The position numbers and the translations under genes are program-made. Shown piece by piece: positions 25,442 to 57,859 of a stretch of 64,000 bases of DNA (the stretch's first letter is position 1; each line of letters opens with the position of its first letter). Below the pieces are notes generated by a model. That model was not told the DNA's origin. It did not search any database and saw only the letters and a program-made list of their open reading frames with translations. Source of the stretch: Podarcis liolepis (taxonomy: Eukaryota); NCBI GenBank assembly GCA_965112155.1, contig OZ218103.1; one strand, 5' to 3'.

Positions 25442-26318
25442 TTAAGAATATAAGAATAACTTGTTGGATCAACCCAGTGGTCCGTCCAGTCCAGCATTCT
25501 GTTTTCACAGTGGCCAACCAGATGCCAATCAGAAGCCACAAGCAGGATATGAGGATCTGAGGTACTCTCCCCTGCTGCAGTTTCCAGCAAGTTGTATTCA
25601 GAAGTATACTGCCCCCAACAGTGGAATTAGAACATAGCAAGTGGGTTATCAGCACACTCATCCACAATCAGCAGCCTTGGATCAGAAAAGGTTAAATTGA
25701 GAATGGAAAATGACTCCTCCATCTCTTGAGCATTCATATTGGTGTAAAAGCAGGTTTCTGAGTTCAACTTCCAATCTTGATATATGCCATTTAATTGTTT
25801 GATTGCTGGATGTGATAGCGACTTGGTGTACTCAGACCCATCCCTGTATTGATGTACCTTCACACCATCACTAACCTCAGGTTCTTTGCTGATAGGTCTT
25901 ATCTGTGGGGCTACAGTCAGAATTTCTGTCTCCACTATCCTGACCAGTGTACCAGTTATGGCATTCAAATCCAAAACTTCCTTTTCCAGTGTGATAATTC
26001 TGCAAAGATTCCCTTTGCTGTTTGTCTAGACAGGAGACATTGGTCATGCAAAAGTTCCCACAGTGAATAAGTTTCAGTCTGTGTTGCGGCTGAGTCTATC
26101 ACACCAAGATTGCTATTACACCTAGCTGAGGTTTCATTACATGGAAGAAGGTGAGATTGCCTTGGAGCATATCTATCAGTGCCTAACATGTCCAGATGAA
26201 TTGGCCAGTTAGCTAAGCTTTCATTAGAGGAATATGTAGCAAAACCTCTCACTTGGGTTTAGGCTTTTCCAGCCCCATTACTTGCACTCTCACAATGTAA
26301 AGGGCCAGGCTTGTCCAT

Positions 26319-26834
26319 GTTGTTGTTGTTGTTTAGTCGTTTAGTCATGTCTGACTCTTCGTGACCCCGTGTACTAGAGTACGCCAGGCACTCCTGTCTT
26401 CCACTGCCTCCCGCAGTTTGGTCAAACTCATGCTGGTAGCTTCGAGAACACTGTCCAACCATCTCGTCCTCTGTTGTCCCCTTCTCCTTGTGCCCTCCAA
26501 CATCAGGGTCTTTTCCAAGGAGTCTTCTCTTCTCATGAGGTGACCAAAGTATTGGAGCCTCAGCTTCACGATCTGTCCTTCCAGTGAGCACTCGGGGCTG
26601 ATTTCCTTCAGAATGGATAGGTTTGATCTTCTTGCAGTCCATGGGACTCTCAAGAGTCTCCTCCAGCACCATAATTTAAAAGCATCAATTCTTCGGCGAT
26701 CAGCCTTCTTTATGGTCCAGCTCTCACTTCCATACATCACTACTGGGAAAACCATAGTTTTAACTATATGGACCTTTGTTGGCAAGGTAATGTCTCTGCT
26801 TTTTAAGATGTTGTCTAGGTTTGTCATTGCTTTT
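26319..26834 (-). mobile_element. Bov-B LINE 3' fragment
   Basis: Translation AMTNLDNILKSRDITLPTKVHIVKTMVFPVVMYGSESW..WCWRRLLRVPWTARRSN..YFGHLMRR; (CAA)n tail at 26319-26335. Confidence 0.95.
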
Positions 26835-27108
26835 ACCTCTGCCTCCCTTGCCGAGTCACAATAGTCCAGCATAGATTTTTGGACTAAATTTGGCAATGGA
26901 GTTCTGAAGTACTGCAGGTCTGTGCTCTTGTAATAACCATGTTAAGAACTGTTAAATGTGCTGAGTATCCTTTGGTCGATATGGTCTTCTAAGTGTTTCT
27001 TATCAGTTAAAAACGCTGAGCCAAAACAGCTGCTCTTCCAACTCCTGTCCTTCAGTGAAAATATATGGCTTTTAAGCCCACATAGAAGTAAAACAGATAA
27101 AACAGATA

Positions 27109-32500: not shown

Positions 32501-33508
32501 TGACACCATGCAACTGACAGATGAGTTGTCTCAAATTCCATCCACCTGTCAAAGTTAACCTGTCCTGCTCGAAGCCAAACAGTTCCCCCACCTCTTTGTA
32601 AGAGGGTAGGACAGTGGGCCTGAACCCCAGTTATACATATTATGTGTGTGTGTGTGTATATACTAAAGCAAAGTACTAATCATCTTAATTTGCCCGGTAG
32701 TGTCTAAACATATAAATTAACATGTGAATGTTATTTTTTTTTTAAATGTGTCTTGGGCCTGTGCCCCAAGTCCTTTAAGTAGCTACTAGCAATGCCCCTG
32801 GAGCCAGGGCTCGATCCCTGGAGTGAAGAGGAGCCCAAGGTTGTGCATGCAGCGGAGTGAGATGGCAGAGTAGACTGTGCAGCATGAGTGCAGAATTGCC
32901 CCTCTTCTGTCTGGGTAGGTGCCTTATTCCGTTCCCTTCTTGGGTGGAAATCCCATGGCCCTATCATCTCAATTTTTAGGAAGCAACTAACTGCATTCCC
33001 TCCCCACTTCTTACTTATTTAGGAATACAGCAGCTGATGCCCAACATAGGCATCACATATCAAACACCTACACAAGTTAGATAAATATATATATGCATAC
33101 ACCCCTGCGTTGTTATTATTTTTGCACCCAATAACTTAACAATGCCAAAAATGATACCTTTTGAGACAAATAAACTGGCATGCAATGTATTCTTTTAAAG
33201 GTACTTGCTGATTTCCCCACCCGTACCCCAAACTTTCCTCCCCTGAGCGTGCATCTCTCTGTGTGTACATATAATTTATGGAACTGAATGTGCAGCTGGC
33301 TTTTTTTCTGACTCACCAAGAGAGGTGGGGCAGGAAGCTATTCGGAATAAAAGGATACAGCACAGCTCCTGCTTTGTCTCTGCCTGTGTCTACATGTGAA
33401 GAGCAGTAAGGAAACTGATAGGAATGAAACATGTTGTTGGAGGGGTAGACTACTCCTGCAAAGGGAGGCTCTGTTGATAAACTTATGCTGCAAAGAAAGA
33501 AATGTGAG

Positions 33509-33511
<3 letters not shown>

Positions 33512-33559
<48 letters not shown>
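33512..33559. repeat. (TG)n microsatellite
   Basis: Directly visible. Confidence 0.95.
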
Positions 33560-33560
<1 letters not shown>

Positions 33561-36509
33561 TGCCAGTTATGTACACACACATGCACAGGAAACAGCTGAA
33601 AATAAATAAATGAATGGGTAAGAGTCTTGCATGGAGTCCATAGGCTTCCCATGAAAAGGATTTGAGTCCTGTAGTTGAAGCAATGTCTCCAGGGAGACAA
33701 ACTTCCATTAATACTGCCTATGTACAACACATATGCACTGCTGTCTCTGCAATGTCAATCTGCATTTTGCAGCGGAGAACAGGCATGGGCAGCCCCAACA
33801 CTGTGGTTGTCCTGCGTACGGAGAGACAACAGAATTAACTTCATCCATTCCGTTCACAAAGGGCAATCTTCCGCAGTGAACTATGTACCAAACCAAGGTC
33901 AGACTTGAATGGTCACAGCCACAAGATGTCACTATTGCCTTACCTGTGTGCCTCCACTTGGGCTTGAAGCAAAATTACCTGCTTGGTGGGCTTCATCCTA
34001 TGCCACCCCAGGGCCATTTTGAAGTAGTATTTGGAACCAGGTGGGCAGGCCCATTGGGACACCTTAGCATTCAAAAACAGCCGTCTTCCCAAGCTATGGT
34101 AATTCTGAATTGGGCTTTATTCAACCCACACTAAAGGAAAGAGCAGTTTAAATTTGTCGTGGATGTAACATTGAAAACAGCCTCTCTGAAGTGATTGCTC
34201 CCCATCCAAGCCAACCATATCTTTCAGATGTACAGCTTATAAGTATTGAAGCTGTCACATTGTGAGTCTCCCCCACTGTCCATCGTGGCCACAAGACAGA
34301 TCTTTTGCATCAGCCTTTAGAAAACAGAACTGACTTGTGTTAGCTTGATATTGATGGCATGGATTATTATTTTTAAACTTGTTCCCTAATGGAAAGCACT
34401 AATGAGTCCTTGCTTTGAAACATTAATATGTTTTAAATTAATAATCTCTTGCCGCAATGGATTGCACAATTGCTTTCATTTCATTTTCAAATGATCTAAG
34501 GCAGGGGTGGAAACCTGTGGGCCATTTATTACCCCCCCCTCCCCCAGTAGTTTTTTTACCTCCAAGATTCCCAACCCCAAATGACTTCCTCCAAAGAATT
34601 CTAGAAACTGTAGTTTACGCCTCACAGCGCTACAATTCGCAGCACCCTTGAACTACGGTTCCCAGGACTCTTTTGGGGAGGAAGGAGAGGGATGCGCTTC
34701 AAATTATTGCTACCATAAAAATAAAAAAAATATTGTTGCCAACAAAAGGTCCAAGGGGCAGGAGACCTCCAAGGTGCCCTGGAGATAATTTCTGGGTTAA
34801 GACAGTGAGCCCCACAAAAAACTCTGGGGCACACTTTTGAGCAATCTGGTTAGCAATGATACAAGTGTAAAAAGAGTACTCTTAAAACTCCAGTTCACGT
34901 GTACGTATCTACCTTCAACGTGACTTTTCTCATTTGTAAGCACCCAATGGGTAACGCCTTAACTGCCTGGAGTGTGTGCACCATTAATGCCAAGTACCAT
35001 TCAGTCGAGTAGCATTTCAGATTGCTTGATGCATTCACTTGAAGATGTCTTCATGTCACTTGATGAGGAGTACAGTATCTCTCCATCTTGAGGCTTGGCA
35101 TTTTCTCTTGATTTGCTTTGCCGGTGCCTGAAATTGATTACCTCAGCTAAACCCACATACGTCCCAGTACATAATGTGCAAGGTTTTGAACTCCTTTGAT
35201 CTGAGATTATGTTTTATATCAACCAATATAAAATGGAACTGCTTTGTTTATGCTGAACAAATATGAAAACATAGGGATGAGCCCGGAGAGCATACCCAGA
35301 TCATAGTGAAAACTAGTAACAGGGGAGCTAGAATGATAACAGGTATTTGCTAAGGAATACAAGTGGGGAGGAGATACCTAGAGTTGGGGTTACAAGGCTC
35401 TGGGAAATCACAAAACAGTGGGGAAACAGTGGCAATTTTCAGGCTTTGCTTCTGTTTTGTATTTTGCATTGTAACAGATTTCTTCTGCGTGTGACCTACA
35501 GAAAATGAATTGACTTGACATCTGCTTAATCAGATTGCATTGAGTAGCTGCATTTGACTTTAAGCCAATTTACCCATTCCATGGGAGCTGTAAATATCTG
35601 AAAACTTGTGGGCACTCTGAGATGTTCTTATAAGACGTAGAAACCCCACCACACAGTTGAACAGTTGTAAAAGTTAGAACCGTGGCTGCTCTCCCTATAG
35701 GCAGGCAATCCCCAATCATAAATCTGTTATTTAACTACAGGACGGAATGACAAGGGAAAGGCTCTAGAATATTTCAGAGAGTGCTCTTCCACCTATGAGC
35801 TCCCTCACCTATTAAGATGATCAGGAAAGCCCTCCCGCCCCCCGCCCCCGTATCCAATGCTCAACAGAACTGCTGTGCAATGGAGCAGGGCCTTCTCAGT
35901 AGTGGCCCTGAGGCTTTTGAATTGTCTCCAAATTCACCTCCATAAATAATAAAGGAGCCGTGTATCTGTTCAGGCCTTTGGTAGCTAGGAGGAGAGGAGT
36001 TTGAGTCTGCTGTTTTTGACGTTTCAGTCAAAATGAACTGGCTTGGTTTTTCAACTTCCATTCATAAAGGTCAGCCCACAGTGCTGCCACCACATATTGA
36101 CATCTTCTCGGTTGGGTAATAGCCAGAAGCATAAAACAATCACTGCAGGATTTGCTGCTTCATTTGTGGTGCTGTTAGGTTAGAGCCTTCAGCCGCTTCA
36201 CTGCAGTTGCTTGCCCAGTCTGAGCATAACCCTCCATGCCCTCTAGAAATTAAAGATTAGCTCAGTGTCCTTTCAGGCCGCTCGCTTCCAACACTGGTTT
36301 TGTTAGGAGACTGGGGTGCAGTGTGTTATGGCTAGGGATGAAGAAGTTTTCAGTTCTCCCATGATCTTCTAGATGCAGAACCCAACTCAAGAAAATAGGA
36401 GGCCTTGTAGGGCCCAGACCTTGAGGAAGGGAACAAGTGGTTAGTATTCTCAGCAACCTTTAAGAACATGTGAAGCAGGTCTGTTTGTTGGACATGAATT
36501 TACTGGGAG

Positions 36510-39500
36510 TCATGTACTTTCAAAATCTGAGACAGGTGAGGATGATGGGAACACAACATTTTCAATAACAGGCTGCTCTTCTAGCTCAAAAAGGGGTGGC
36601 AAAATAGCCCCACCTGGCTCTTCCTCTGGATTGGGAGGAGTTGGAAACATGACACCTTCTTGGTCAGGATTCTCCAAAGTGGGAGAAGGCAACAGGGGAG
36701 AGTCATCTTTGTCAGGATTCTCCAAAGTGATAGAAGGCAACAAGGGGGGGTCATCTTTTTCAGCATTCTCCAAAGTGGGAGAAGGCAACAGGGGAGAGTC
36801 ATCTTTGTCAGGATTCTCCAAAGTGATAGAAGGCAACAGGGGAGAGTCATCTTTTGGGGAGTCCGGAACAGCAAGGACTGTGACTTCTTTTTCCTGCTTG
36901 GTCTCGCCATCACCTTTAGGAAAAGAATCCTGTTTCTTCTTCCTTCTACGACGGAAGTACCAGCAGCAGCTGCACAGAGACAGGGAATCTTTATTACCAT
37001 AAGGCATGTGGATCTTAGTAGGCACCCCTCCCATACAGCTCTGGTTGCCCAGAACCCCATGAGCAAAATACAGGGAGGGACACATATAAGGAATATGGAA
37101 GCCAGATTCATAGGAAAGTGGTAACATCCCCCTTGCCCAAGAACTCTGTTGGGTTAGGGCAGGGGTAGTCAACCGAAGGCCCGTGGGCCGGGTGCAGCCC
37201 AATCGCCTTCTCAATCCGGCCCGCGGACAGTCTGGGAATCAGCGTGTTTTCACATGAGTAGAATGTGTCCTTTTATTTAAAATGCATCTCTGGGTTATTT
37301 GTGGGGCCTGCCTGGTGTTTTTACATGAGTGGAGTGTGTGCTTTTATTTAAAATGCATCTCTGGGTTTTTTGTGGGGCATAGGATTTCATTCATTATTAT
37401 TTTTTTCAAAATATAGTCCGGCCAACCACATGGTCTGAGGGACGGTGGACCGGCCCATGGCTGAAAAAGGTTGCTGACCCCTGGGTTAGGGTATGCTGGT
37501 TGGGGTATCTTGGCCAGGATCAGGTGGTGGTTACTGAAAAGTGATAATAATCAAATTGTAGAAAGGCATGTGGGGAAACTATGCAAGGGGGCTGTATTCA
37601 GAGGAAGGGCAAAGGTGGAATGAAAGCAATACCTGTTTGGTGCACTCTAGTCCCAGAAGCCAGGAAAGTAGAGAGCTGGTGGTGCAGGTATATGATCCCA
37701 TAGTGGAGGCATTCCCTAGGCACCCCCACCCCCAATTATCTGTGATAACTGGTTGCACAGCCACTGTCATTTCTTGGGACCCTGCCCTCACTTAATGACC
37801 AGCCACACATCTCTTTGGCCCACCAAATTTTACAGAAGTGGGCTTAGACAGGAAAGAAGAAAACCCAGAACTCACAGCACAATGATACAGAGGCAAGTAA
37901 GCAGCAGGACGACAAAGATCACCAACAGAGCAGGAAACCCATGTGTTGGAGGGACTGCGTGGAAAGAGACACAGATCACTCAAGAGTGCCAGTTCTCCTC
38001 AGCACCCAGAGCCAAGCTGCCTATCCAGCAGTAGCACCTGCCTCTATTAAGTTAAACAGGAGGGGAGCTTAAGTATCACAGTGGAAAGAAAGGCCAAAGG
38101 GAAATAGGCAGCCAGTATAAACAAACACTGTTTGGACCAAATTCACACATGCGCAGAACTGTTCCCTCACTAGATGCTCGTATATATGGTTGCAGTCTAG
38201 GAGCGCTGTTTCTTAGGTACCTAAGAACACAAGAAAAGCCTTGCTAGATCAGGCCAAAGGACCACCTCCTTCAGCATCTTGCTCTCACTGAGGTCTGCAG
38301 GAAGCCTGCAAGCAGGACATGAGTGCAACAGCCAATAGTGGAGGTGGAACATAGCCATCTGAAGATAAATCTGTCTTTGGATTTAACATACAGGTTTGAG
38401 GGGGCATTAAGTATACAGAGCATCACCTTAGGGAAGATGGATAATTAACACGATCACAGGAGGTGAAATTTAACTCTCCTGTTGTGAGTCTTGTGGTAAG
38501 AATTTACTTCTACATCACTTTGTCTGTTACCCAGGTGAGGGGCCACCTTTTAAATAAAACACAGAACCAAGGAAACTAATTCAAGTCCAGCATCCAGGAC
38601 TGAAGTAAATCCCTCCTCTGGAGCTAGTATTTCCATTGGGAAGAAATTCCCCTTTGCAGCAAATCTTCCCAACTTCAGAGGAGGGATTTTTCTCAGGACT
38701 ATGGCAAGGAAAGTGTTAAAATCCCCCCCTTCACCCCCTACAATCATGATACTTATCAGCCCCAGCCACACAGCTGATGCTATGTGCATTTTTTAAAACC
38801 TTGAACATATTTTACGTTGCATCTAGCTTGACTCTCAGCATGCTAAATCCAAGAACCAGTGCTGGAAAATCCAGAGAGGTCTCTCAGGAAGCCCTTCCTC
38901 ATGTCTCCCACCTGATACATACCTTCTGGGCTGATGCATTCCGCAGCTGTTCTGGCAGCAGGGTGCAAGGTTGACCCGTTGTGGTAGCACTGAATGCACA
39001 CAGTTGCCCCATAGCGCAGGCTGTATGTTCCAATTGGGCAGGGAACACAATTTCCAGCTGCAGACACACTATATGTTCCAGGAGGGCACGCAGCTGTCAA
39101 GCAAAATGGCAGATAAAGGCATGGAGGGGGGAGCGAAAGGAGCAGAGCCTGAAATATAGACAGCACACAGGTTTCATTCCTCCATCAGCTAAGCTGGAGG
39201 GGTGGGGAGGGATTAGGGAAAGAGGGATTTCAAAGCTGGCCGCATACCATGTGAGCCCTACCCAAGGGGCATCGTTTTTCAATTGTGCTCCTCAAAGGAG
39301 TTGTGGAGAAGGTGTCTCTTCCTGGAGTCGAGGGAGTCATGCTTAGCGCAATGTGTTAAACAGGTGGACAAAATAGCTCTGACTGGATGGAATTACAGAT
39401 CGGATCCAAGGGCTGTGTACACATCATGCATTTAAAGCATATGACTTCCCCCCAAAAATATTGGGAAGTGTAGTTTGTTAAGGTTGCTGAGAAATATAGC

Positions 39501-42500
39501 TCCACGAGGGGTGAAAACTAAAGTGTACACAGCCCAAGGGCACCTGGCAGAGCTACAGTGAAACTCTAGAACAGTCTTTCCCAACCTTGGGTCTCCAGCT
39601 GTCTTCAGACGACAGTTCCCATCATCCCTGACCACTGGTCTTGCTAGCTAGGGATGATGGGAGTTGTAGTCCAAAAACAGCTGGAGACCCAAGGTTGGGA
39701 AACACTGCTCTAGAGGAAGGGAAGGTAGAGAGAAGAGAGCCATTACAAACCCAGTGCTCTCCAGATGTTTTGGGGCTGGTGGGAGTTGTGTTCCAAAACA
39801 TCTGGAAGGCACTGGGTTTGCAAAGGCTGGGGTGACAGCTAAGAACAAATGTGGCGAGAGGCTTCCCAGTGGCATGAACAAACACTGCAGCCTATGGGAC
39901 CAGAGGCAGCGTCTGAGGAGGGATGAGGCAGCAGCTCATGGATCACCTGCTCCACTCACTACAGCAGTCGGGACAGCGTGCCTGTAGCTCCGGGGTCTGT
40001 CCATAACCTTCCAGGCATGTTCCACCCTCCAGGAAGTTGACAAAGGTGTTGACGAAGGAGGTGCGGGAGGTGGGCGCCTCTCCCAAGGGGAAACGTTTGT
40101 TGTTCTCCATGAATATGGTTATTGCTTCCTCGGCCTGTAGGAAGATGCATAGGGTGGTTCAAGAGTGGGCTAAGGAAGACTGGGAGGTCTGCTTTTTGTT
40201 ATTGATCTGTTTTTCTGAAAAAGGAAGGAAAACAGGATTGCAGGGAAAACAGAGAAGTATAAGAATCTGATGACAGGGTCATCACAAGAGTGAATGAACA
40301 AAATGTGGCAATTCCATTGTAAATGCCTAGAATGCAAGCACCCATTGTTTCTTCGAAATATGCATAACCATGCGATTCTTGCTTGTATTGCCTCAAAGTA
40401 AATAACCCCAGTCATTCCATGTGCAGCGATGCACATTAGCCTTGTTCCGGAAGATAAAAGACATGATTTCCCTTTGCAGCTCAGCAACATATGTAGGTAC
40501 AAAGCCCCAGCAAACTTATTTCCTGGTAGGGGAGAAATGAGGTTTGGTGACGTACCTGCTGCAGATTGCTCAAGACAGCTCCATTATAACAATCAAATTC
40601 CAGTGCATCAGCCTTGGGGGAGCAGAACTTATCCCAGCCCTTCCCAAAAGGAGATACTAGAAAACAATGACAAATATGTTACGGTCCCTTTGCCAATAGG
40701 CTCGCTCTTCCATCTGTGCACACAGAGTCCAAACCCTCATTCCAGGATATGGCAAAACAGATCCACTATATGATGCCTGCATGAATGCAGTTAAATATGT
40801 TAATTCAACTTAGCGCAACCCTCCAGATCATGATACATATCCATTGCCACCCTTGCTGCTTAAGAAATGTTCCTCCGGCCAATCCAAGGGAATGTACCTT
40901 TACCCAAAATCTGTCTGTTCTCAGCAAAGACACACACTGAGGCTACACTTACTTCTGGTGTTTTCAGTAGGCAGTCCTAGCTGGTGAAATCCTGCCTTTC
41001 TGCACGAGCCTCTCCTGCTCCAAACTTCACTTCCTCCCCAAACTGTGACTGAACCCAGCCAACCTGACTGCCATCCTCTAGAACAGTGTTTTTCAACCAC
41101 TGTTCCGCGGCACACTAGTGTGCCGTGAGATGTTGCCTGGTGTGCCGTGGGAAAAATTAAAAAATTCGAAAGATTTTTTTTTTTTTTAAAGTCACATTTT
41201 CGATTGGGGCGCCGTCCCCGGAGGGAGGCGGGCGAGTCGGGCGGCGAGAGGCGGGGCGGCAGCGGCGAGGAGAGGCCGCCCAGCGCGGGGCTCTCGCCGT
41301 CTGCCTGCCTGGCTGCCTGCGAGCTCGGCGGGCAGCGCCTCCGTCCGCAGCGCCCGCCTCGCGGCTCTCATTCCTTGCCCCTGCCAAAGCTCACCCAGCC
41401 AAGCCGCGGTCTCCTTCCTGCCTCGCTTTGCTGCCTCCTCCCCCCCACCCCCAAAGCTTGGAGGTTCCCCGGCGCCGACCTGCAGGTTTGACCCCCTTCT
41501 CACACCTGTTCGCACTCCTTGCACGGAATGGGGCGGATGGGGAGGAACGGGGCTCGCCGCTGCCTCCGCTCGCCCTCCCCCCCTCCGCCGGCGGTCCCGC
41601 GATTCTTGGCTTTTTGGCGGTTGGCACAGAAGGAAGGCAAGGGGGAGGGGAAAAAATTGAAACTTACACTTTCGTGCGTCCCTCCCGGCGTGACGCTGCG
41701 CGCTGACGTCACGGGGCTGTAATGGTGGTGTGCCTCGAGATTTTTTTCATGAAACAAGTGTGCCTTTGCCCAAAAAAGGTTGGGAAACACTGCTCTAGAA
41801 ACACCCTGAATTTCTTGGTTCTGACCTTCAAGCTCTACCTGGAAGTTGAACTCATCCAAGGGTTTCTCCATGGTGGGGAAGCAGCTGATGGCGCCAAGCA
41901 GAAGTTCACAGTGGAGGTGGTGCACCACCTCACTCAGATGCTCTCGCAGGGTCTTCAGGAACCCGTGCGTCAATTCCTCATCGCAAGAGTTGCACTGAAA
42001 AAGCAGTAGGACGTGCAGCTCTGCACGTATGTGGTAGCCTGGGGAAATAGGCAGAGAAAGGGGAATCTGGAAGGCAGCTTCTCCTACAAAAACAGGAGCT
42101 CAAAAGACAAAGGCAAAAGTCACATCTTCCACATCATGTCCACTATGAAGAAGTTAAAGAGGACGGAAAGAAATTGTAAACACCTAAGAAAGACAGTGGA
42201 TCCTTAGGAGAACAGAGAGAAACCACCTATGTTTGGCCACAGCGTCTGGCCACAGGCCAAAATTTCTCCCAGTATATGTCCCCCCCCCCTCCACTAGCTT
42301 CCTCCTGGTTCCAGCCAATCACCCATCTAGTCAAATAGTTCAGTCCCCTTTGTTTCACTATCCTTCAAGACATCTGGAATCCACTCACCCACCACTGTGT
42401 GATAGAAAGTTTTAGCATGGAGCTGGCCATCCGTGGTGTAGGAGACTGTGCAGACATACAGTCCACTGTCATCAGTATGAAAATCATGCAGAGTCAGGGA

Positions 42501-45500
42501 AGCATCACCACTGAGGGGATGGGTTCCTGAAAGTAGAGGGCAGAATCAGCCTAAGGAGAACAATGTTCTGTTACAACCAGCTTAGGCACCAATACTGAGG
42601 TCAAGAGAAACCCCCTGTCTTTTAATACTTCTATAGCTTCATGTGGCTCTCGGCTCATTGGTACATGGATGCATCGAGAGAGTCTAATTATTTTCTGCTG
42701 CCCTTGTGCCATGAATGCCCATACAAAATACCTTTCTGGAATCCCGACATTCTACACCGTATTTTCTTATTATAGGAACCATGCACTGGGTAGCTTAGAT
42801 TGGCAGGTACAGTTAGTCAATATTTTGTGACATGCTGATACTATTTTACAACCAAGTTTTGGGTTTGGAAAAGCAAGTTGTCTCACAGCTTGCTTCAGTC
42901 ATACCTTTTAAGTAACAGGAACCTTAAAAAGCTGAGCTCTGGGTCAATTTCATTTCCAGTAGTTCTGATGTTTTTGCCAATATGCCTGTTGTGAAGAATA
43001 ATCTCTCCAGACTTTAATTTGGGTGGTCAGTTTCAGGTCAACTTGGTTTCACATCTGGGAAACTTAACAGGTGCATCAATGTGTTTGCAAGTTACCTTTT
43101 CATGCATCTTCAAGCCTCACCCCAAGCAGGGATTGAACTGGTATAAGAGGTAAAGATGGGCCCAATCCCCACACACTCCAAATTTAGCAACATAATGGCC
43201 TCTCTGTAGCATTAGGAGGAGGAGTGACATAACATGGGCTCTTGCCCAAGGCACAAGGACACAGAGGGCATAGGAAAGACTAAACTAATTCTCAACATAA
43301 AATGCTTGGGAAATATTTATCTTGGGTGCTAAAGTTCAAATCAGTCTGAGGTGCAAAAAAATCTCTGTTGCTGATCATTCTAGAAAAAACATTGGCAGCC
43401 CTGGGACACCAACAGGTGCCTTTTCCCAAGTAATCCATCCTCTTCTTTCCCTCACACATCTGTCCCTGACATCTACTGAAAGATCCTAGAGTCCCAAGCA
43501 ATAAGGCCTAACCTTCGTTTTCCAGGCTCCAGTTGTAGGTGGGATTCATACCAATCACAACATCCATCTCTGAAGACTTGCAGGGGATAGTAAATTCCTT
43601 GGCACCAATGTGGACAAAGATGGTGTCTGAAAAAATAGGCAGATATAGTGGTTTGCACATCTGACTAGAACCAAGAACACCTGGGTTCAAATCCTCCCTT
43701 GGCCATGAAGCTCCCTAGATGACCTTGAGCCAGCCACTACCTCTCAGCCTAATCTACCTCATAGGGTTGCCATGAAGATAAATGGAAGGTGGAAGAGCTG
43801 TGTACTCTGTCTTGGGCTTTTTACTAAATTTTTACTAAATTTAGTAAACAACGAATAAATCAGAATCAATTTGGCATTGGTGATAGGGCAATGGGAAAAC
43901 AAGGTTCTTGGTTGGGCTTTGTGTTAATGGGCTCAAATCATCTAATGATCATCTATCGCTTGGCTAGCTCAGGTGGCCAGAGCGCAGTGCCAAGGCCATG
44001 GATTCAAGGCACAGATCAGATGGCCACTGAAGATGGATGAAACAAGGCCACAGTGGATTGAGCTGATCAGATGATGTCCCCATTTATTGCTTGTTTATTT
44101 TACTTAGTGCAGTGTCAGCTAAATGGAACTGATCTTTATTACATTCTCACCCATCTCTCCAGCTGTCTTTCTAACACGTGCCAGTCCTGCAGGAGTTCCA
44201 TTGTCAGACAAGTCAAGGTGAAGTCCACAGCCTGAAAAGGAGCAGACTTCAGCATGGTGCCTCCTTTGGAAAGTATCATTACAGACTTGTCTGCTGTATC
44301 TGTGTGTTCATAAAACGGTAGTTCCCAGCTTCATGGTACATTGTGCGGTCTGAAACCCACCCCAGAGCTCCTGTGTTTTGACCAGGGAGAGTCGGAAGTT
44401 AAATTGGGATATACTGGCAAATCCCCGGATGACACAGAGTATTTCCACAACAGCAAGTAAAACTGATATATACAGTGGACGCTTGGGTTGCGAACGTGAT
44501 CCGTGCAGGAGGCACGTTCACAACCCGCAGCGTTCGCAACTCACAGCGCCGCGTCTGCGCACACGTGGGTTGCAATTTGGCACTTCTGTGCATGCGCAAA
44601 GCATGATTTAGTGTTTCTGCACATGCGCGAGTGCTGAACCCAGAAGTAACCCATTCCTGTACTTCCGGGTTTGGAGCGGTGTGCAACCCGAAAACATGCA
44701 ACCTGAAGCATCTGTAACCTGAGGTATGACTGTATCTGCCATTGGTGACTTTATAGAAATCACTTATCTCTCAGCCTGTGTTCCTCACCTGGAAAGTTGG
44801 CAGCAATATTAACACCATACCCAAGAGGAAGCCCTAGTAAATTCAACAGGACTTCCTTCTGAGTACACATGGAATTGCATTAATGGCTGCCGCTGGCCAG
44901 TTTTAGAATTCTGTGTTAAAATCCCTAAACTGTAGTAACTTAGATGTTGAATTATTAATTATATATTTATTTTTTGATGTAGTTATTGTTACAGTACATT
45001 TTCATTTGTGTATATAGTTTATTCCAGTGTATGGTTTGTGGGGTGAAACAGGTAATTCTGCCTGCTGAACCACCCTTTTCCATGGGGTGCCAATCCTGTT
45101 CCCACCGCCACCTTTGTACAATGTGGCTCTGTACTGTCCACCCACCCCAGCCAGGATCTTGCTCCTGACACCATTTGGTAGACCTCAGGAGGATAGCAAT
45201 ATACAAAGTCAGTTTCAGAAGTCTCAAATTGAACTTCACGATTCAGCTCTCTAGCTCCATGAAGGAGCCATTTCGGGCCAGAATATTGTGTTTTTGAGCT
45301 GCCTGCGAGGCGATTCCATCCGTTTTTGAGGGCAGATTCGAATGTTAATTGAATTAATAAACTCGTATAACAGGCAGGCGTTTAGGAGACCGTGCCCTTG
45401 GCTCTTTTCACAAGCGACTGCAGCTCTGATGTGCTACCACCACATCCTCGAGGAGACACCCGGTTGCAGCCTAGCCCCTCGACAGCACCCTTCTCCGTAC

Positions 45501-45594
45501 CGGGCCCATCACACAGCAATAGGACTAGGATCCCCAAAGCGACGCCGGCCGACCAGCAAGACATGTAGCCAGACTTAAGGGCGATATGTCCCAT
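36510..45594 (-). CDS. Membrane-anchored zona pellucida-binding protein (ZPBP/Sp38)-like type I transmembrane protein, 10 exons, 541 aa (531 aa from Met at 45564)
   Basis: Exons on -: 45594-45501, 44231-44151, 43626-43513, 42526-42389, 42038-41826, 40656-40556, 40134-39960, 39093-38923, 37954-37876, 36969-36510. All introns are GT-AG, all phases match, total 1626 nt with no internal stop. Signal peptide (MSCWSAGVALGILVLLLCDGPG); Ig domain (FTIPCK..PTYNW..LTLHDFHTDDSGLYVCTVSY); ZPBP-like region (FLKTLREHLSEVVHHLHCE..TCLEGYGQTPELQARCPDCCTACPPGTYS); TM helix (ALLVIFVVLLLTCLCIIVLCCWYF) followed by RRRRKKK. Confidence 0.85.
36663..36854 (-). repeat. Coding minisatellite, 4 x 48 bp (16-aa unit KDD[SP]PLLPS[IP]TLEN[PA][DE])
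   Basis: Four near-identical 48-bp units; the I/P alternation suggests a 96-bp higher-order duplication. Confidence 0.95.
37160..37483. mobile_element. Non-autonomous hAT (Charlie-like) element in intron 9 of the ZPBP-like gene
   Basis: Termini CAGGGGT..ACCCCTG; perfect TSD GGTTAGGG at 37152-37159 and 37484-37491; internal duplication of about 70 bp. Confidence 0.88.
39572..39707. mobile_element. Palindromic hAT MITE in intron 7 of the ZPBP-like gene
   Basis: TIRs CAGTCTTTCCCAACCTTGGGTCTCCAGCTG..CAGCTGGAGACCCAAGGTTGGGAAACACTG; TSD CTCTAGAA / CTCTAGAG. Confidence 0.88.
41084..41792. mobile_element. CpG-rich non-autonomous hAT element in intron 5 of the ZPBP-like gene
   Basis: TIRs CAGTGTTTTTCAACC..GGTTGGGAAACACTG; perfect TSD CTCTAGAA at 41076-41083 and 41793-41800. 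Confidence 0.9.
43640..43860 (+). mobile_element. Old tRNA-derived SINE (Squam3-like)
   Basis: TAGTGGTT..CCTGGGTTCAAATCC..GACCTTGAGCCAGCCACT..CTCTCAGCCTAATCTACCTCATAGGGTTG. Confidence 0.65.
44473..44732. mobile_element. Tc1/mariner MITE in intron 1 of the ZPBP-like gene
   Basis: TA-CAGTGGACGCTTGGGTT..AACCTGAGGTATGACTG-TA; related to the other Tigger-like MITEs. Confidence 0.75.
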
Positions 45595-45880
45595 TCTAGA
45601 GCCCCCCGTGAGAACGGGGGGGTCTCAGTAATCCCTGCAAGAGCCATGCGGTTGCTACGCAGCCTAGAGCTCCTTCGTGACGTCGAGGCGTTCTAGAACC
45701 CATCTCCGCCACCGTCCCAGCAGAAGACGCTGCTAAAGTTGCTTTCGCCTCTGATAGTTTCTGGTCCTCGGCGGCCCCCGTCGGCGCGTTTTTATGCGTC
45801 ATCCGATTGCGACAACCTGGAAGCAACGGCTTTTCGCAAACTAGGCGGCGTTGTGTTTGAGGACTGAGGACTACCGGAAG
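45595..45880. promoter_or_regulatory. CpG-rich bidirectional promoter shared by the ZPBP-like gene (-) and SNAPC2 (+)
   Basis: Divergent starts: ATG at 45594 (-) and a putative non-coding SNAPC2 exon-1 donor CCGGAAG|gtaacg after 45880. CRE-like TGACGTCG 45678-45685, CGTCA near 45797, RFX-like half site GTTGCT at 45650, ETS CCGGAAG at 45874. Confidence 0.65.
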
Positions 45881-46029
45881 GTAACGAGCAGCGTTGTGTC
45901 GCCTTAGAAGCCAGGAACGGGTGGCTAGAGGTGAGGGGCTAAAGAGAATAGGAGCTGGGCGGGTGGCAATTGACACCCCTGGGCGTATTTTAGGTTCTTA
46001 GCTTTATATTGTTTTCTCTTCTCAGCGCC

Positions 46030-48609
46030 ATGAAGCCGCCTTCCAGGCAGCGTTCAGCCCCTGCTCGCTACAGGACGGCCCCCACGAGCCAGGCTTGGAC
46101 GGACCCAGAAAAGCGACGCCTTCTTCGGGCCTTGAGAGCTCACGGCCAGGGTCCGCTGCGGCCCGAGCTGTTGAAGAAGTACCTGCCTTCGAGGGATGAA
46201 GAAGAGGTGGGTTGAGGCGTGGCCACGTGGTGGAGGGCAGGATTCGAACTTGGCCGGGCTGTGAGCTTCCTAACAACCCCACGAGTTGGCGGACTGATGA
46301 CCAGCATGCAGGGTTTGGAGACAAGGACTCTATCTCTGGTCAGCCAGGTGGCCTTGACAGATAAATCATAAGGGACGACATGGGAGGATGAATTGGGAGA
46401 GGACCTATGCTCCTTTTTTAAGCCTCTACACATTCATACTGGCAAATCCTAGTTAAAGGGGAGTAATTGCAAACTTTCTGCCTTGAAGAAATGCTCAGTT
46501 TTTATGTCTTCAGAAAGATAGATACTGTCTTTCCCAAAACATTCCATGTATGTCCCCTAAGTTGTGCTGCTCTTGCAGATCATGGCATTTGTGGAGCACC
46601 TGAAAGAGCGTGTGGCAAAGGAAGCAGTCAAGGAACAATATCAGTATCGCCAGCGTAAACAGAAGGATGCTCCTATTCCAGCACCTATTGAGGTATGAGA
46701 GTTTTAAAGGTGTAGGTAATGTGATATGGCACAACATAAGCTAAGGGCTATTCACACAACTGACATTTCCTTTTTTTAGATATGGACAGAGTTAGCTGAG
46801 AAATTGACAGGTCCCCTTGAGGATGCTGTGGCAACTGCTTTTTCCCAGGTAACCTTTTCTATGATCTTAATAAGATAGATATTGTTCTTGGTGTAGTCAT
46901 TTAAGATATCTGTATGTCTCCATCTGACAAAATATCTCTGAAATACATGGCTCTGTCCTGGTTCTCTTGGTTCTTGTATAACTTTTCAGACAGATTTAAT
47001 GCTGGGAAATGTATTTGGTTTACTAGAGAACCCCTGACTACTTGGCATACAAAGCCCATACTTGATTGTGACTTTTTCTCTACTCATTAGGTTTGGACAA
47101 TTGCATCTACTGAGCCACTCACCTTGCTCCATTCCGTGCCTCCAAAGTCAGTGGTGATAAAGAATTCTCAATGTTCATCCCAAAATCTTCATAGTGAGAG
47201 TAGGAAATCCGATGAAGAATCTCATGAACCAACTGTATCATCAAATGTAGAGGAAATAGCCCCTGCAGAAAACAGTGGGTTCCATGTGGACTTTGAAAAG
47301 ATCTACAAGTACCTTTCTGTGATCTCACGTGGCTGTAAGGCACCTGAACTCCCACCATGTGGTAAGTCGGCATTTGTGTTGGACCAAGATGACTTTAAAT
47401 AACAGGCAGCTACTGGAAGAAATGTTTCTGCACTGGAATGTGACTCCAGGTAACCAAGACATCTATTACAGCATGCCTACATTGGTGCCAGGCAAAAACA
47501 TTTCTCCTTATGGAAACTGCCTTATTGAGTTTTATTTGCAGTCATTCCATCCCTTCCTTTTTATACTGTTGCTTTTTCTTTATTGTGCCATTTTTGTCAT
47601 CGGCTGTGGAGTTCTATTTCAGCTGAAGGGCTGGACACTAAATCTTAAAAACGCTTCCCAGAAATGGAGCATCCCCTAGGACTGGAAACACTATGTGTCC
47701 TGCCAAAAATTGTACTCCTTCTGCCAAAACTTCCAACATATTTAGTGCTACTAAAAGCAACAACCACCTTGCTGGGCATAGTTTGGTAACCTTTGAGGTT
47801 ACTGTTGTGGATGATGGGTGGGATTTGAGGGACCAAGGAAAACATTTCAGAAGGGAATTGTTTGTTATGTTTCTCCCCACCCCCCAGTGAAAATATAAGT
47901 GGCCCGTGAGCATGGAGACAGGTAGAGTTTTCCTAGGTGAGAGGAAACAGCAACTTGTCATATAACGTAAAACAGATAAAAGGTTCTCATCAGATTTCCA
48001 GTTTTTAAAATAAAACTTCTTATATAGAAAGTTATCCTTAACCTCTAAGACGTAATTTTTAAAAATCTAAAATAGCTTAGCTGTTAATGTGAGAAAATTT
48101 ACTACTTCATTTGTTACACATGTTGGAGGCAGGGTGAAGTTTCAGAATCTGTAACTGGAGAGCAGGAGATAAAAAAATCCTGCCTATGTTTCTGCCAAAG
48201 TGAGTGTAGCCACTCTCCTCATACATTTTGCTTGCTTTCTGCAGAGTCAGCTGTGGTCCTAGATTTGCTACTGTCACTGCCAGAAGAGCTGGGCTTTCTG
48301 GACTTTAAGAAGCTGAAGAGTCACATGCACAAATGTTACACAGAGTTGAACACCCACTGCACAGGTGAAAGAAGCAGAATGAAAGAGGGCAACCAGCCTG
48401 TAAACAATAATGGGGAGCTATTTCCGCATGTGCAGCCAGCTACAAGTGGCTTACCACAACAGGAGGAGAGTAGTAGTTCTACCACCACTTCCAAAGATGA
48501 TGCAACTTCTGCCTCTGCCATGGACTGGAAAACTCTGGGTATCTGCCCTTTGAATCCATTCTTGTTTCCTTTAGCTATCCTTGCACGTAAAGAAGAAAGC
48601 TTTGACTGA
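46030..48609 (+). CDS. SNAPC2: snRNA-activating protein complex subunit 2 (SNAP45), 331 aa
   Basis: Exons 46030-46206, 46579-46692, 46780-46848, 47091-47361, 48245-48609 (996 nt, GT-AG, phases consistent). Motifs [82 protein letters not shown]. Confidence 0.93.
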
Positions 48610-53100: not shown

Positions 53101-56100
53101 CAATTACTCTGCTTGCCTGCTCCTGTAAGATCCAGCCAGCATTTGCCTGTAACACTTTGTGCTGTCATATTCTGCATCAAGAGGACTCCAGTATCCTAGG
53201 GTTGGGGACCCCTTTTGTGAGACCCCATGGGAAAGGTGAAGAATACAGGACTGTGGCACTAGTGTGAGAAGCAGATAACATAAAAACCTTCCCCCCCACA
53301 CACAAAAAAGCAAAATTCCATTGCCTACTAAAGAACCGCCTCTCGCTTGGGCAATGCTCACCTGGGCACCTTGCTTAAGTTCAATGTTGCTGCTTACTGG
53401 ACACTGTGCATCAAGAGTTTTCACCAGTACAGGGTCACTATCCACTGCCTTGAAGGACCTTCGTTCTCCTAGAAGACAGACAAGATGTAAAAAACTTGCA
53501 TCCCTCCTGCCTGATGTGTTTTGAAAGGGTTACTCCCTAATAGCTGAGCTGCATGTAGGGGGCTCTGTTTCATCCTTCCACAGCCCCAGGTGTTGTGAGC
53601 TCCAAGTATTAGGCTCTGCACACTATTCTGAAAGCATAATTCTGTAGAATTCCAGACAATACATATCATAATATGTTTCCCATTTCTGCAGGTATCAGCA
53701 ACAGAAGAAAATATTATAAATAAATAAATGTGTCCTTGTATTCACCTATCGAAAACTGGTGGCAAGAATATCAGGCCTGGAAAACTTAACTATTGGTGTC
53801 AGTAGGATGTATTGCCTAATTTTATAATGGTCTTATGTTGTTTTATTCAGGAAGAAGAGGGGCAGGGCAAGTTCCCAAGTGTTGGTTCCCAGCTCTTAGC
53901 TGAAAGTCTGTCTCTAAAAGGAAAGGGCTACTTGTCACAGTTGGAGTCATTGCAGCATTCTCACCAGGCAACTCATCCAGCCTTCTAGCATTTGTGAGCT
54001 CCACATCATCCTTGTGGGTGCACAACCGGGTAGCCAAGATTCCATCTTTCTCCACCCGATGGGTAGCTGTAAGTGTTAGCTGTCTGGTAACCTCCTCTGT
54101 GCATCTGAATGGGGACAATTAAAATTAAGAAGACATTTGTATCGGATGAGAAACATTGAAGACCAAGAAGAACTATCAAGCTTGCTACTGTGCCCATTCA
54201 AATTACTTTCCATGAGAACACGAGGCCGTAACCAGCACCAAAACATGGAGATCAACTCTGTGCATCGCTAGCATGAGAGCGAGGATGCTTGCAGGTGAAG
54301 GAATACCCCAGCAAACCCGGCACCTCTAAATTCCCCATTCCTCCAAACCCAGTGTCTCCCAGCATTTCTCCATGGTTCCTCAGAATACTTGACCCAAATT
54401 TCAAACAGTGCAATGAGTTTGAAGGAAGTATTGGAGCAGGCCAGCCAACTTGGCAGAAGCAGCTATATCAGCATTCAAATGTTTGGTAATGTCTCTCTAG
54501 ACATAGGACTTCCATCCCCATGAGATTAGAATCTCCCCAGCCAGATATTCTGCTGGGGGAGGATGGCATCTCACCTGCCCAGGCGGACAGTATGCAGAAG
54601 AGAAATGAAGTCCCTGTCAGTCTGCCTCCGCACCTCTGTCAGCTCCATGTTCAGGTGGATACACTTGCGCCAGCTCTTTGCCTGTGAAGGAAACCCTTTG
54701 ATCAAACTACAGCTCAGCCTGTGACAAGAGCATGCAGTGACAAGAGCATGCAGTGACAAAGAGCAACAGCAGCACACCTGGAAACAGAACCTGGGCTGCT
54801 CGGAGGATTTGCTGACAGGAGGCAGCTGCAAGAAGTCTCCACATACGATGAGTTGGATTCCTCCAAATGGATCCTCACATTTCCTGACAGCTCTACCAAA
54901 AGAGAATGGAGACACCTTCAGGGAGCAGATTTTATTCTGGTCCAAGAGAAAAGAAATGCAATGTCCTAGACCAAGGATGGGAAGCCTGTGGCCCTCCAGA
55001 TGTTGTTCTACTGCAGTCCCCATGATGCCTGGCTGTTGGTCATGCTGCTTGGGACTGGTGGGAATTGTAATCCAATTGCATCTGGAAGATTCCCTGTTCC
55101 TGTTTCCCTTGCAACACTTACACATGCTCTGCATACGCTAAGACAGAGTAACAAATATAATTCAGTTCTGCTTCTCTCTGTGGCTGAAAACCCCCTTCTA
55201 GGACCACATTATACTTAAGGAGTCATATTAGAACTATGCATGGACAGGAGCATGGGAAACAGACAGGACTGAAGCACAGAGATGGCAATGCTGACTGGTG
55301 GCTCTGGGTGGGCACTGGCCACAGCGTTACCAAAACTAGATGCGGGACTGAAGAGAATACATAGGCAAAGCTGTGAGTGTGAGACTGTTTGCTGCAGAAT
55401 TGCATCAAGTGCCTGCTTAGTCAGAACTTTAAAACAACTATGCAATGTTTTGTCTTCTGCCCTATTAATACCCTCCCCAAAGCCATGTACACACAGGATT
55501 AATGCAAGTGCAGCAATATCCCCCAAAAGGAAGGCTCCACCCACCTAGCTACTGCCTCCAGTTTATCAAAGAAATCCCCCTCCACCATAGAGATTTCATC
55601 TATGATCAGATGGCGGCTGTTCAGCCATTGCTGCCGAATTCCGGGTCTCTGAGCCAGCTCAATGCACTGATGTAGGGAGGCCTTTCCGGACCCAATACCT
55701 ATCAAAGGAGAGGGGAAAGAGTATATCAGCAGTAACCCATCACTAGGCCCATTTCCGCTTCCCTCCTTTCCCAGGATCCCAGTTACCTGCAAAGGCATGG
55801 AGAGTAGTGCCACCAATCTGACATGCTGCCACCCCTGTGCTGGCTGTGGCGTAAGTGCTGTTTGGAGGTAGCGAGGCCATGATCTTTTTCAGCAGGTAGG
55901 ATTTCCCAGTCCCTACAGAGAGAGCCCTTGTATTTAGAGGCAAACAATCTAAATTTCAGTTTTACAATTATTCCAGCACCATTGATACTTCCCTCCAAAG
56001 CGGAACCATTTACATGGCAAGAGGCAGGTGTAAAACTTGATCAGTTTTAGAAGTGACACCTAGATTGTAAATCAAAGTCGACTCAATGGTATCTGCCTCT

Positions 56101-57721
56101 CATAAATCTCCACCTGCCCCATGCCACTACCCCAAAAAAGGGAGACATCAGAATCACCGACTTTACATACCTTAAATTCCAGGTTTGTTCAGTCTAGAAG
56201 GAATGCAAGATTCCCACCATAGTAGATGAAGCCACTACAACCTCTAACCTGCAAACACATAGACCCTCCTTGACCCTCTTCTCTCACCAGCACTGCCTGT
56301 GAAGAAAACATTCTTCCCACTCAGCACTGCATTCAACACCATTGACTGTTCCTGGGAGAGTTTTGCTTGGGAGCACATGGACCAAGTCTTCTTCACCTGC
56401 TGCTGAAAAGAGCACAGAAACCTGCCTTATGTTGAGTCAGACCAGTGGCTCATCTTGTTCAGTACTGTATCCACTGATTGGGAGCAGCTTCAGACAGGGG
56501 TGTTTTTTTAGCCCCATCTGGAGATTATGTGGGTTGAGCCTATAACATTCTGCCTGCATAACATAACTTACTACATTCCCCAAAAGGCAAACTCCTCTGA
56601 ATCCAAAGTGCTCATGAGAGCTTTCCATCCCATCTCCCTTGATTACAGCAGCCAGAGAGGAGAATGCCTCTCTTATCCAGAGGGATAGTTCTTTGAATTT
56701 CAATTGGACCAAAGAAGCCTTACGTTCAAATAGAATAATAATTTGACCTTGCCCATACTACTTTGGAGGTTCTGCTCAGGTATCTGCCAGTAAGACCAGC
56801 ATGCATTGGAGGAAGGGCCTACTCTGTGGTGGCCTCAGTTATGGAACTTGCTAAGTGAGTTTCTGAAGTGCTTAAGGAGTGCATGAATCTGTCACTTTGC
56901 ATAACCACAACTTCAGCATCTGGGATTAGCAGGTGAGTATGTCCACTTCTCAGAAACTAGCCACCACTCTTATGCCAAGGATGGGGAACCTCTGGGTATC
57001 CTTGGACTCCAACTCCCAGAAATCCCAGCTAGCACTGCCAGAACAGGGGTGATGGGGGTTGGAGTCCAACAATAGCTGGACGGCCAGAGATCCTTTTATT
57101 ATGGGCAGATCCAACTCCCAGCTAGATCATGCTTTTCGGCAGAAGCCGACTCACCTGTTTCCCATCGATGGACTCACTCCGGATCCGCTTCCGAGACGCG
57201 CAGCGTAAGGGCTGACCTTTCCGCGGGGTGCTTGTCACGTCAGTCAGAGCCTGCCGGGCGCTCGCCTGCTGCAAGTCGCGAGTCTGCACCGGGCTCACCG
57301 TGTCGAACGTCCGCGGTCGGCTAGCGAGAAGCCGCGTTCGCTCGGCCACAGGCTTGGTCCCCTGCTGGGCGGCTGCGTGCTTGATGCGCAGCGTGTGGAC
57401 GAAGCGGCGCAGCCGATCCGGAGGACAATTAGAGAGCAGCAGCTGCACGTGATTGTGGTTTGCACCGAGCTGCACCGAACTCTTCCCCTCCTTCACGAAG
57501 CGTGTGAACAGCCGCACTTCACCTCGCCGCAAGGGGAAGTTCTGGGGGCTCCCCGGACCGGCGGCGCTGGCCACTTGCAGAACCAGCTCCTGGAACTCGT
57601 CCCGGCCCAGCGTGACCCAAGCATCGCGGAGAAGCACACGATTCGGGGCTGCTGCAGCACCCAGGTGCTCGATCGCTACGGTGCAGCGAACCCGACCATC
57701 CGCTTCGGAGCCTGGTTGCAT
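50125..57721 (-). CDS. PIF1: ATP-dependent 5'-3' DNA helicase PIF1, 12 coding exons, 636 aa
   Basis: Exons on -: 57721-57155, 56402-56288, 55912-55787, 55698-55545, 54892-54778, 54681-54575, 54104-53965, 53468-53362, 52218-52131, 51799-51654, 51128-50937, 50178-50125 (1911 nt). Motifs [62 protein letters not shown]. The last exon ([17 protein letters not shown]) is the least certain. Confidence 0.95.
50234..50544. mobile_element. GC-rich hAT MITE in the last intron of PIF1
   Basis: Imperfect TIRs CAGGGGTGGAGGAAG / CTTGCTCTGCCACTG; perfect 8-bp TSD TGATCCCC at 50226-50233 and 50545-50552. Confidence 0.8.
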
Positions 57722-57859
57722 CCCGTCCAACTGAAAACGAGGAGGCAACGCAGAAGTCGAGACCAGCTAAAATGTCTGTACTAAAAAGACGCCGACTTCT
57801 TGCTGCCTTTCCCTTTCGCGTTGATTTCGGCAGCCACTTATTTCTCCCATGTACCTAAG

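Follow-up and report, generated by a model that had tools for sequence, protein, structure and literature searches.

ZPBP1 and ZPBP2 are testis-specific acrosomal proteins whose genes adjoin IKZF1 and IKZF3, respectively, and both are soluble proteins of the acrosomal matrix; to our knowledge, no further member of their family has been described. Here, we describe a relative of these proteins in the lizard Podarcis liolepis, encoded on the minus strand of a 64,000-nucleotide stretch of contig OZ218103.1 (GenBank assembly GCA_965112155.1) that we refer to throughout as the window. The gene is intact, has ten exons, and encodes a type I membrane protein, with an ectodomain built of an immunoglobulin (Ig) domain, an alpha/beta domain and a Cys-rich module, followed by a transmembrane (TM) helix and a disordered tail. 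Like ZPBP1 (Sp38/IAM38) and ZPBP2, it has the order signal peptide, Ig, middle domain, and Cys-rich end, with EGF_Sp38_C at the C-terminal side and, at the N-terminal side, an Ig that reaches the Sp38 threshold in bird orthologues, whereas, unlike either, it extends beyond the Cys-rich module with a stalk, a TM helix, and a cytoplasmic tail of 100-370 amino acids.

Spliced by script, the exons running from 45594 to 36510 yield a 1626-nt coding sequence for 541 amino acids in which the only stop is the terminal one; each of the nine introns has GT-AG ends, with phases 1,1,1,1,1,0,1,1,2, exactly reproducing the boundaries and frame proposed in an initial annotation of this DNA. Exon 1 (45501..45594) encodes the signal peptide from a start codon at 45594 and ends in a phase 1 donor, though orthologues conserve the second Met, at 45564 (MSCW...), and M11 is nearly invariant in our alignment of 39 sequences (A2). 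Exon 2 (44151..44231) is an 81-nt phase 1-1 spacer (CGLHLDLSDNGT...) that is found in three predicted proteins (P0033, P0001, and P0002), and its SDNGT motif is common to other squamates. The first half of the Ig domain, with the B-strand Cys and C-strand Trp, lies in exon 3 (43513..43626), and the second half (DSGLYVC) in exon 4 (42389..42526). Exon 5 (41826..42038), whose acceptor at 42038 is confirmed by RNA, begins the alpha/beta middle domain (YHIRAEL...FLKTLREHL...FNFQVELE), which continues through exon 6 (40556..40656; SPFGKGWDKFC..., phase 1 to 0) and ends in exon 7 (39960..40134), where the first half of the Cys-rich module is also encoded (CLEGYGQT...CPDCC). Exon 8 (38923..39093) supplies the second half of this module, exon 9 (37876..37954) the stalk and TM helix (FPALLVIFVVLLLTCLCIIV), and exon 10 (36510..36969) the juxtamembrane CCWYFRRRRKKK and an acidic, Pro-rich, disordered tail, with the stop at 36510-36512. 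No minus-strand AATAAA occurs between the stop codon and 34530.

As a near-identical stand-in for whole-protein tests we used isoform X1 of Podarcis raffonei LOC128415914 (P0033, 557 amino acids). By tblastn against the window, P0033 aligns to every one of the ten exons with the boundaries of the model; identity is 89-100% except in the short match at exon 2, which extends beyond the exon. An eight-exon model (1476 nt, lacking exons 2 and 6 and using an exon 5 acceptor at 42083) was overturned by RNA joints and orthologues.

Evidence for kinship with the ZPBP/Sp38 family comes from Pfam profiles and from ESM Atlas neighbors. The window's exons were searched singly, and whole-protein searches rest on database orthologues such as P0033. 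On its own, exon 4 matches Pfam V-set at 27 bits, with a weak match to the Sp38 N-terminal Ig (E 0.0097), while exon 8 passes the cut-off of 23.1 for Ephrin_rec_like (PF07699) with 39.5 bits (E 4.9e-10) and also touches EGF_Sp38_C (E 0.046), a domain that is split between exons 7 and 8. Exons 1, 3, 5, 7, and 10 searched singly gave no Pfam match, and exon 7 searched singly gave no match in the ESM Atlas. In whole proteins, EGF_Sp38_C (PF20626; cut-off 24) is passed by P0033 at 27.6 bits and by P0001, P0004, and P0006 at 28.8-31.1 bits, in proteins of Podarcis, Vipera, and Pogona. The Sp38 Ig profile (PF07354) gives the lizard protein 16.3-16.6 bits, under its cut-off of 23.1, whereas two bird orthologues (P0012 and P0052) exceed it at 28.7 and 32.4 bits, and precomputed annotation lists the domain for most birds and sea turtles. 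The nearest ESM Atlas neighbors of the Pogona short isoform are ZPBP1, ZPBP, and ZPBP2 clusters at 0.97, with 221-226 of 256 features in common. With EGF_Sp38_C passed in the near-identical P0033, Sp38 passed in birds, and ZPBP clusters closest in the Atlas, the family assignment of the initial annotation is supported.

The architecture read from the sequence (signal peptide, one Ig domain, Cys module, TM helix, and acidic tail) is borne out by both the script and the predicted fold. Hydrophobic segments in the 541-residue model lie at about residues 9-37 (signal peptide) and 369-392 (TM), the latter followed by CCWYFRRRRKKK. An AlphaFold2 model computed with a 39-sequence alignment places an Ig domain at residues 60-146, an alpha/beta domain at 149-284, a Cys-rich module at 287-360, a TM helix at 369-403, and a disordered tail at 405-557; the predicted local distance difference test score is 81-95 over the greater part of residues 61-360, dips in places to 67-75, and falls to 32-47 in the tail. 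The ectodomain thus laid out is that of ZPBP in full, ending in a Cys-rich EGF_Sp38_C/Ephrin-receptor-like module with 16 conserved cysteines. The TM helix is flanked by cysteines and followed by a basic stop-transfer sequence and a fast-evolving tail. One element of the earlier description does not stand: the Ephrin-receptor-like segment had been taken for an extra Cys module, but in P0033 its match (311-358) overlaps that of EGF_Sp38_C (287-338) by 28 residues, and PF07699 is also carried by 11% of one Atlas ZPBP2 cluster. We therefore count one Cys module and not two, and the Ephrin-like segment is probably the family's own C-terminal Cys module in an extended form.

Several other proteins resemble this one in part. 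IZUMO1, SPACA6, and TMEM81 likewise span the membrane once in type I orientation and have a single Ig domain plus a short stalk, a likeness that implies no homology: they carry a helical bundle before the Ig domain, whereas in the AlphaFold2 model the lizard Ig follows the signal peptide and spacer without a preceding helical bundle and is itself followed by the alpha/beta domain and Cys-rich module. Izumo-Ig profile scores are 11.5-18.1 bits, under the cut-off of 26.7. The modeled Ig fold matches IL-1RAcP and similar chains at Z 9-11, with IgLON chains among the matches as well. Foldseek matches the model to thyroglobulin (7n4y; E 2e-9), whose GCC2/GCC3-type region also matches the profile, and to the N-terminal Ig and S6-like pair of alpha-dystroglycan (E 3e-5); these alignments span about 260-280 columns with low TM-scores and a root-mean-square deviation of 14-18 A, meaning that the domain types are common to the proteins but their rigid arrangement is not. 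The PDB holds no ZPBP structure.

RefSeq, B10K, and other pipelines already predict this gene in about 90 sauropsid species. Searches with Pogona, turtle ectodomain, and profile queries recovered these orthologues, which belong to squamates, turtles, Alligator, and a wide range of birds, chicken and turkey among them; predictions of the same gene, alike in architecture and TM segment, include P. raffonei LOC128415914 X1, P. muralis XP_028589641.2, Pogona vitticeps XP_020638856.3, Alligator KYO46517.1, and chicken A0A8V0ZRT0. Among 92 matches, the 85 with a source name are all sauropsid except for a camel hemicentin (a weak Ig match, E 1e-3), and six short fragments have no source name. In line with the initial annotation, which recognized no human counterpart, no mammal, amphibian, or fish relative was returned by sequence and profile searches, though true ZPBP1 and ZPBP2 were not returned either; because of the word prefilter and length limits of these searches, their outcome does not show that relatives outside sauropsids are absent.

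Conservation falls from the ectodomain to the tail. Among 1.84 billion representative sequences, exon 5 (70 amino acids) is 100% identical to Podarcis proteins and 37-70% identical to those of other sauropsids. By tblastn, ectodomain exons share 59-69% identity with Pogona and 33-48% with Alligator and duck, whereas the tail shares 36% with Pogona. These comparisons place the window in a Podarcis-like lacertid that differs from P. raffonei, P. muralis, and P. lilfordi. Alignment A2 contains 33 invariant columns, 13 of them cysteines. Every full-length orthologue has a TM segment of the form R(F/I)P...PPL.C.C.I.L.C(Y/W), or ...CYW in birds, and its retention from birds to lizards upholds the proposed type I topology. 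On the cytoplasmic side, the elements found in more taxa comprise the cluster of Cys and basic residues next to the membrane and, except in birds, a motif at the C terminus, (V/F)FP(S/P)(S/P). In P. liolepis, the tail also contains a tandem repeat (36658..36854, minus strand) with 4.1 copies of a 48-nt unit, encoding 16-residue units that each carry DDSPLL, and the copy number varies between Podarcis species. Four [DE]xxxL[LI] motifs are found in Podarcis and 0-1 in all other taxa, so the acidic dileucine is a lineage-specific feature and was ruled out as a conserved signal.

RNA evidence confirms part of the exon structure and qualifies the rest. With the last exon as query, we found eight small runs from two studies in which about half of the query words, corresponding to its exonic half, were present. 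Mapping covered 36530-42529 and used Logan contigs of two of these runs (X1 and X2) together with reads of two bulk runs (X23 and X24). Of the nine junctions that the initial annotation had predicted, three were confirmed, all of them GT-AG: 42389>42038 (exon 4 to 5) in an X2 contig, 40556>40134 (exon 6 to 7) in X1 and X2 contigs and one raw X24 read, and 38923>37954 (exon 8 to the TM exon) in an X1 contig. Exon 10 is covered by contigs of both X1 and X2. At exon 7, however, the X1 and X2 contigs join exon 8 at 39093 not from 39960, the donor of the membrane-anchored isoform, but from a donor 13 nt downstream at 39947, and the 13 extra bases (39947..39959, minus strand; GTGAGTGGAGCAG) match without mismatch. 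This extension shifts the frame and leads to a premature TAG at codon 318 (39069..39071, minus strand; ...CPDCCSEWSSCVPSWNI*), in exon 8 of the +13 isoform only, 146 nt ahead of the exon 8 donor and with two more junctions downstream. The earlier concern that transcripts might end before the TM exon is thus partly borne out, in that the frame of the +13 contigs stops at codon 318. Because this stop follows the first four cysteines of a ten-cysteine module, we read the +13 form as a truncated soluble product or as a degraded transcript prone to nonsense-mediated decay.

The +13 donor is not peculiar to Podarcis. The exon 7/8 joint CPDCC|T(A/L)CPPG is common to about 70 orthologue models, but after CPDCC Pogona isoform X4 (P0029) reads SEWSSLVPSWNI, Varanus (P0039) SEWSSLVPSWNIQ, Anolis carolinensis X2 and Rhineura X3 SEWS..., and Ophiophagus SELS..., which makes the donor no younger than the squamate families with SEWS in common. 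Gene predictors are misled by the choice between donors 13 nt apart, as the Anolis and P. lilfordi models show, the latter (P0002) bending the frame within exon 7 to fit the +13 donor. We rejected an exon 7 frame that keeps the +13 donor open, since the conserved cysteines are lost and the P. lilfordi model alone uses such a frame. A second source of soluble forms is suggested by isoform X3 of P. muralis and P. raffonei, in which the TM exon is skipped and an alternative open frame of the tail exon is read; in the window this second frame spans 176 amino acids (36581-37111, minus strand). The locus therefore yields both anchored and non-anchored forms: the long isoform is not secreted without an anchor, as the acrosomal matrix ZPBPs are, and only the +13 and exon-9-skipping forms would be soluble. 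A further 13-nt donor pair, at exon 5 (41826-41839), mirrors that at exon 7: an alternative GT lies at 41839, 13 nt upstream of the exon 5 donor at 41826, and one X2 contig ends exactly there. Donor 41839 was ruled out of the coding model by the resulting stop in exon 6, and combining the shifted donors of exons 5 and 7 does not restore the frame, as the exon 6 stop remains.

These observations raise the alternative, which we consider doubtful, that the lacertid locus is mainly non-productive, with the +13 stop and exon 9 skipping predominating and an intact reading frame left by past selection or by selection in other lineages. All exon 7/8 contigs, from both studies, use 39947, and no contig at exon 7/8 carries the anchored joint 39960>39093; the contorted P. 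lilfordi frame and the skipped TM exon of isoform X3 would also fit such a locus. So would the ratio of nonsynonymous to synonymous changes of 10:3 among the 13 exon differences listed between the contigs and the window (57 further differences exist), although several of the 13 fall in the tail repeat and could be register errors. Against this, the 1626-nt frame is without a disabling change in four Podarcis species, and the SEWS lineages share the old +13 donor yet keep the downstream exons open and conserved. Because Logan contigs lose minor variants, the missing 39960 junction is unobserved rather than excluded and carries no weight for a non-productive locus; support for the anchored mRNA comes from pipeline models and from the deep conservation of the downstream reading frame.

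The genomic setting bears on how the gene relates to ZPBP1 and ZPBP2. SNAPC2 exons (46009-48609, plus strand; Pfam PF11035, 34.7 and 92.5 bits) lie head to head with the ZPBP-like gene, in keeping with the placement beside SNAPC2 and away from IKZF genes that had been described for this locus. Farther away are PIF1 helicase exons (54571-57748, minus strand; PF05970 with an N-terminal PH_LRR1-like domain) and a single-exon open reading frame (ORF) of 658 amino acids for a Kv1-type potassium channel (7762-9738, minus strand; BTB_2 and Ion_trans, ending in TDV), and no IKZF-like gene was found within the 64-kb window. Instead of the divergent third paralogue proposed in the initial annotation, the gene could be the sauropsid orthologue of mammalian ZPBP2 (or ZPBP1), relocated and with its anchor kept or gained. 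Pipelines do call the bird proteins "ZPBP2 protein" and that of Pogona "zona pellucida-binding protein 1", part of an Atlas ZPBP2 cluster shares Ephrin_rec_like, and no separate sauropsid ZPBP1 or ZPBP2 was returned by any search. That last gap, however, is explained by the word prefilter, and most RefSeq names are "-like" or "uncharacterized LOC", the usage for genes without an assigned orthologue. The neighbors are SNAPC2, PIF1, and the Kv1 channel instead of IKZF1 or IKZF3, and the low Sp38 profile scores (16-32 bits) fit an outlying branch. In addition, a passage in PMC7647744, citing Lin et al. 2007, has ZPBP1 and ZPBP2 coexisting in birds. Taken with these points, orthology to ZPBP2 or ZPBP1 seems unlikely to us.

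Where the gene is expressed is a separate matter. The start codons of SNAPC2 and the ZPBP-like gene lie about 415 bp apart, and both first exons fall in one CpG island (45400..46400; GC 0.58-0.59, CpG observed/expected 0.65-0.97), which probably serves both genes as a bidirectional promoter. Sharing such an island with a housekeeping gene is more typical of broad expression, and it opens the possibility that the protein works as a surface receptor of ZPBP fold in cells other than those of the germ line, such as epithelial, neural, or immune cells; its family membership would then carry no information on a role in fertilization. Its modules are generic to adhesion molecules and receptors (an Ig like those of IL-1RAcP and IgLON proteins, and an Ephrin-receptor-like segment), and the runs with spliced exons carry coded tissue labels. 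On the other hand, both characterized family members are testis-specific and acrosomal, and the exons attract hardly any reads from X23 and X24, the two bulk RNA-seq runs of the same species, which suggests restricted expression. Reproductive proteins also commonly show the features seen here, a tail that evolves fast and, between close species, a surplus of differences that change the protein. We therefore regard a receptor outside the germ line as somewhat unlikely.

The reading we favor, albeit with modest confidence, is that this gene is the orthologue of LOC128415914 and a divergent sauropsid member of the ZPBP/Sp38 family, whose anchored form has a role in sperm and is controlled by splicing. 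By analogy with ZPBP1 and ZPBP2, the long form would be made in spermatids, where it could tether its ZPBP-type ectodomain to the membrane of the acrosome or the sperm, and the anchored ectodomain might then help to organize the acrosomal matrix or bind the egg coat. Splice choice would set the amount of anchored protein: use of the squamate +13 donor after exon 7 would lead to the codon-318 stop and hence to a truncated soluble product or a degraded transcript, and the exon-9-skipping forms in pipeline models would add further soluble products. Several of the observations above weigh against this reading, namely the lizard Sp38 Ig scores below the profile cut-off, the absence of the anchored joint from the exon 7/8 contigs, the near lack of X23 and X24 reads on the exons, and the 10 protein-changing differences among the 13 listed, a hint only, which suggests weak constraint or rapid short-term evolution. 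The sperm role is drawn from family analogy. A more specific version, in which the membrane-anchored ZPBP of sauropsids is a receptor for the perivitelline coat that mammals do without, and in which a squamate-wide 13-nt donor switch selects between anchored and truncated or degraded forms, strikes us as improbable as it stands.

The remainder of the window offers a few further observations. It contains no runs of N and no tRNA genes. Within the introns of the ZPBP-like gene, three blocks (37130-37529, 39530-39929, and 40930-41929) reach depths of hundreds to tens of thousands in all four runs, with many irregular joints and loose ends, and are multi-copy transcribed repeats. The initial annotation had counted at least five transposon insertions in these introns; three such blocks were seen, and because BLAST within the window gave few repeats, the transposon claim rests on read depth. 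Inside the third block, the sequence at 41150-41700 combines a very high GC content with long open frames in either direction. Elsewhere, the Kv1 ORF sits within a GC-rich block (GC 0.61 at 8001-10000), and SNAPC2 and PIF1, which lie on different human chromosomes, are neighbors in the window. Two overlapping minus-strand ORFs at 26259-26896 resemble reverse transcriptase (…WCWRRLLRVPWTARRSN…) and are probably a fragment of a long interspersed element, and a (TG/CA)n microsatellite at 33313-33730 (minus strand) appears as a THTHTH run in two ORFs.

In conclusion, this gene is already predicted across reptiles and birds, and our search of the literature for a membrane-anchored or "-like" ZPBP found no description of it as a distinct membrane-anchored class. 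At least five names are in use for this one locus, among them "zona pellucida-binding protein 2-like", "ZPBP2 protein, partial", "zona pellucida-binding protein 1" (Pogona), "mucin-1-like", "Ig-like domain-containing protein", and "uncharacterized LOC". Studies of birds and tortoises describe a "ZPBP2" as testis-expressed, rapidly evolving, or positively selected and do not state which locus is meant, and the "ZPBP2" of bird and turtle selection and proteome studies may be a different gene from mammalian ZPBP2. The fertilization molecules of birds and reptiles are poorly known, and a conserved, membrane-tethered ZPBP in these animals would be a candidate for binding of sperm to the egg coat or for assembly of the acrosome.

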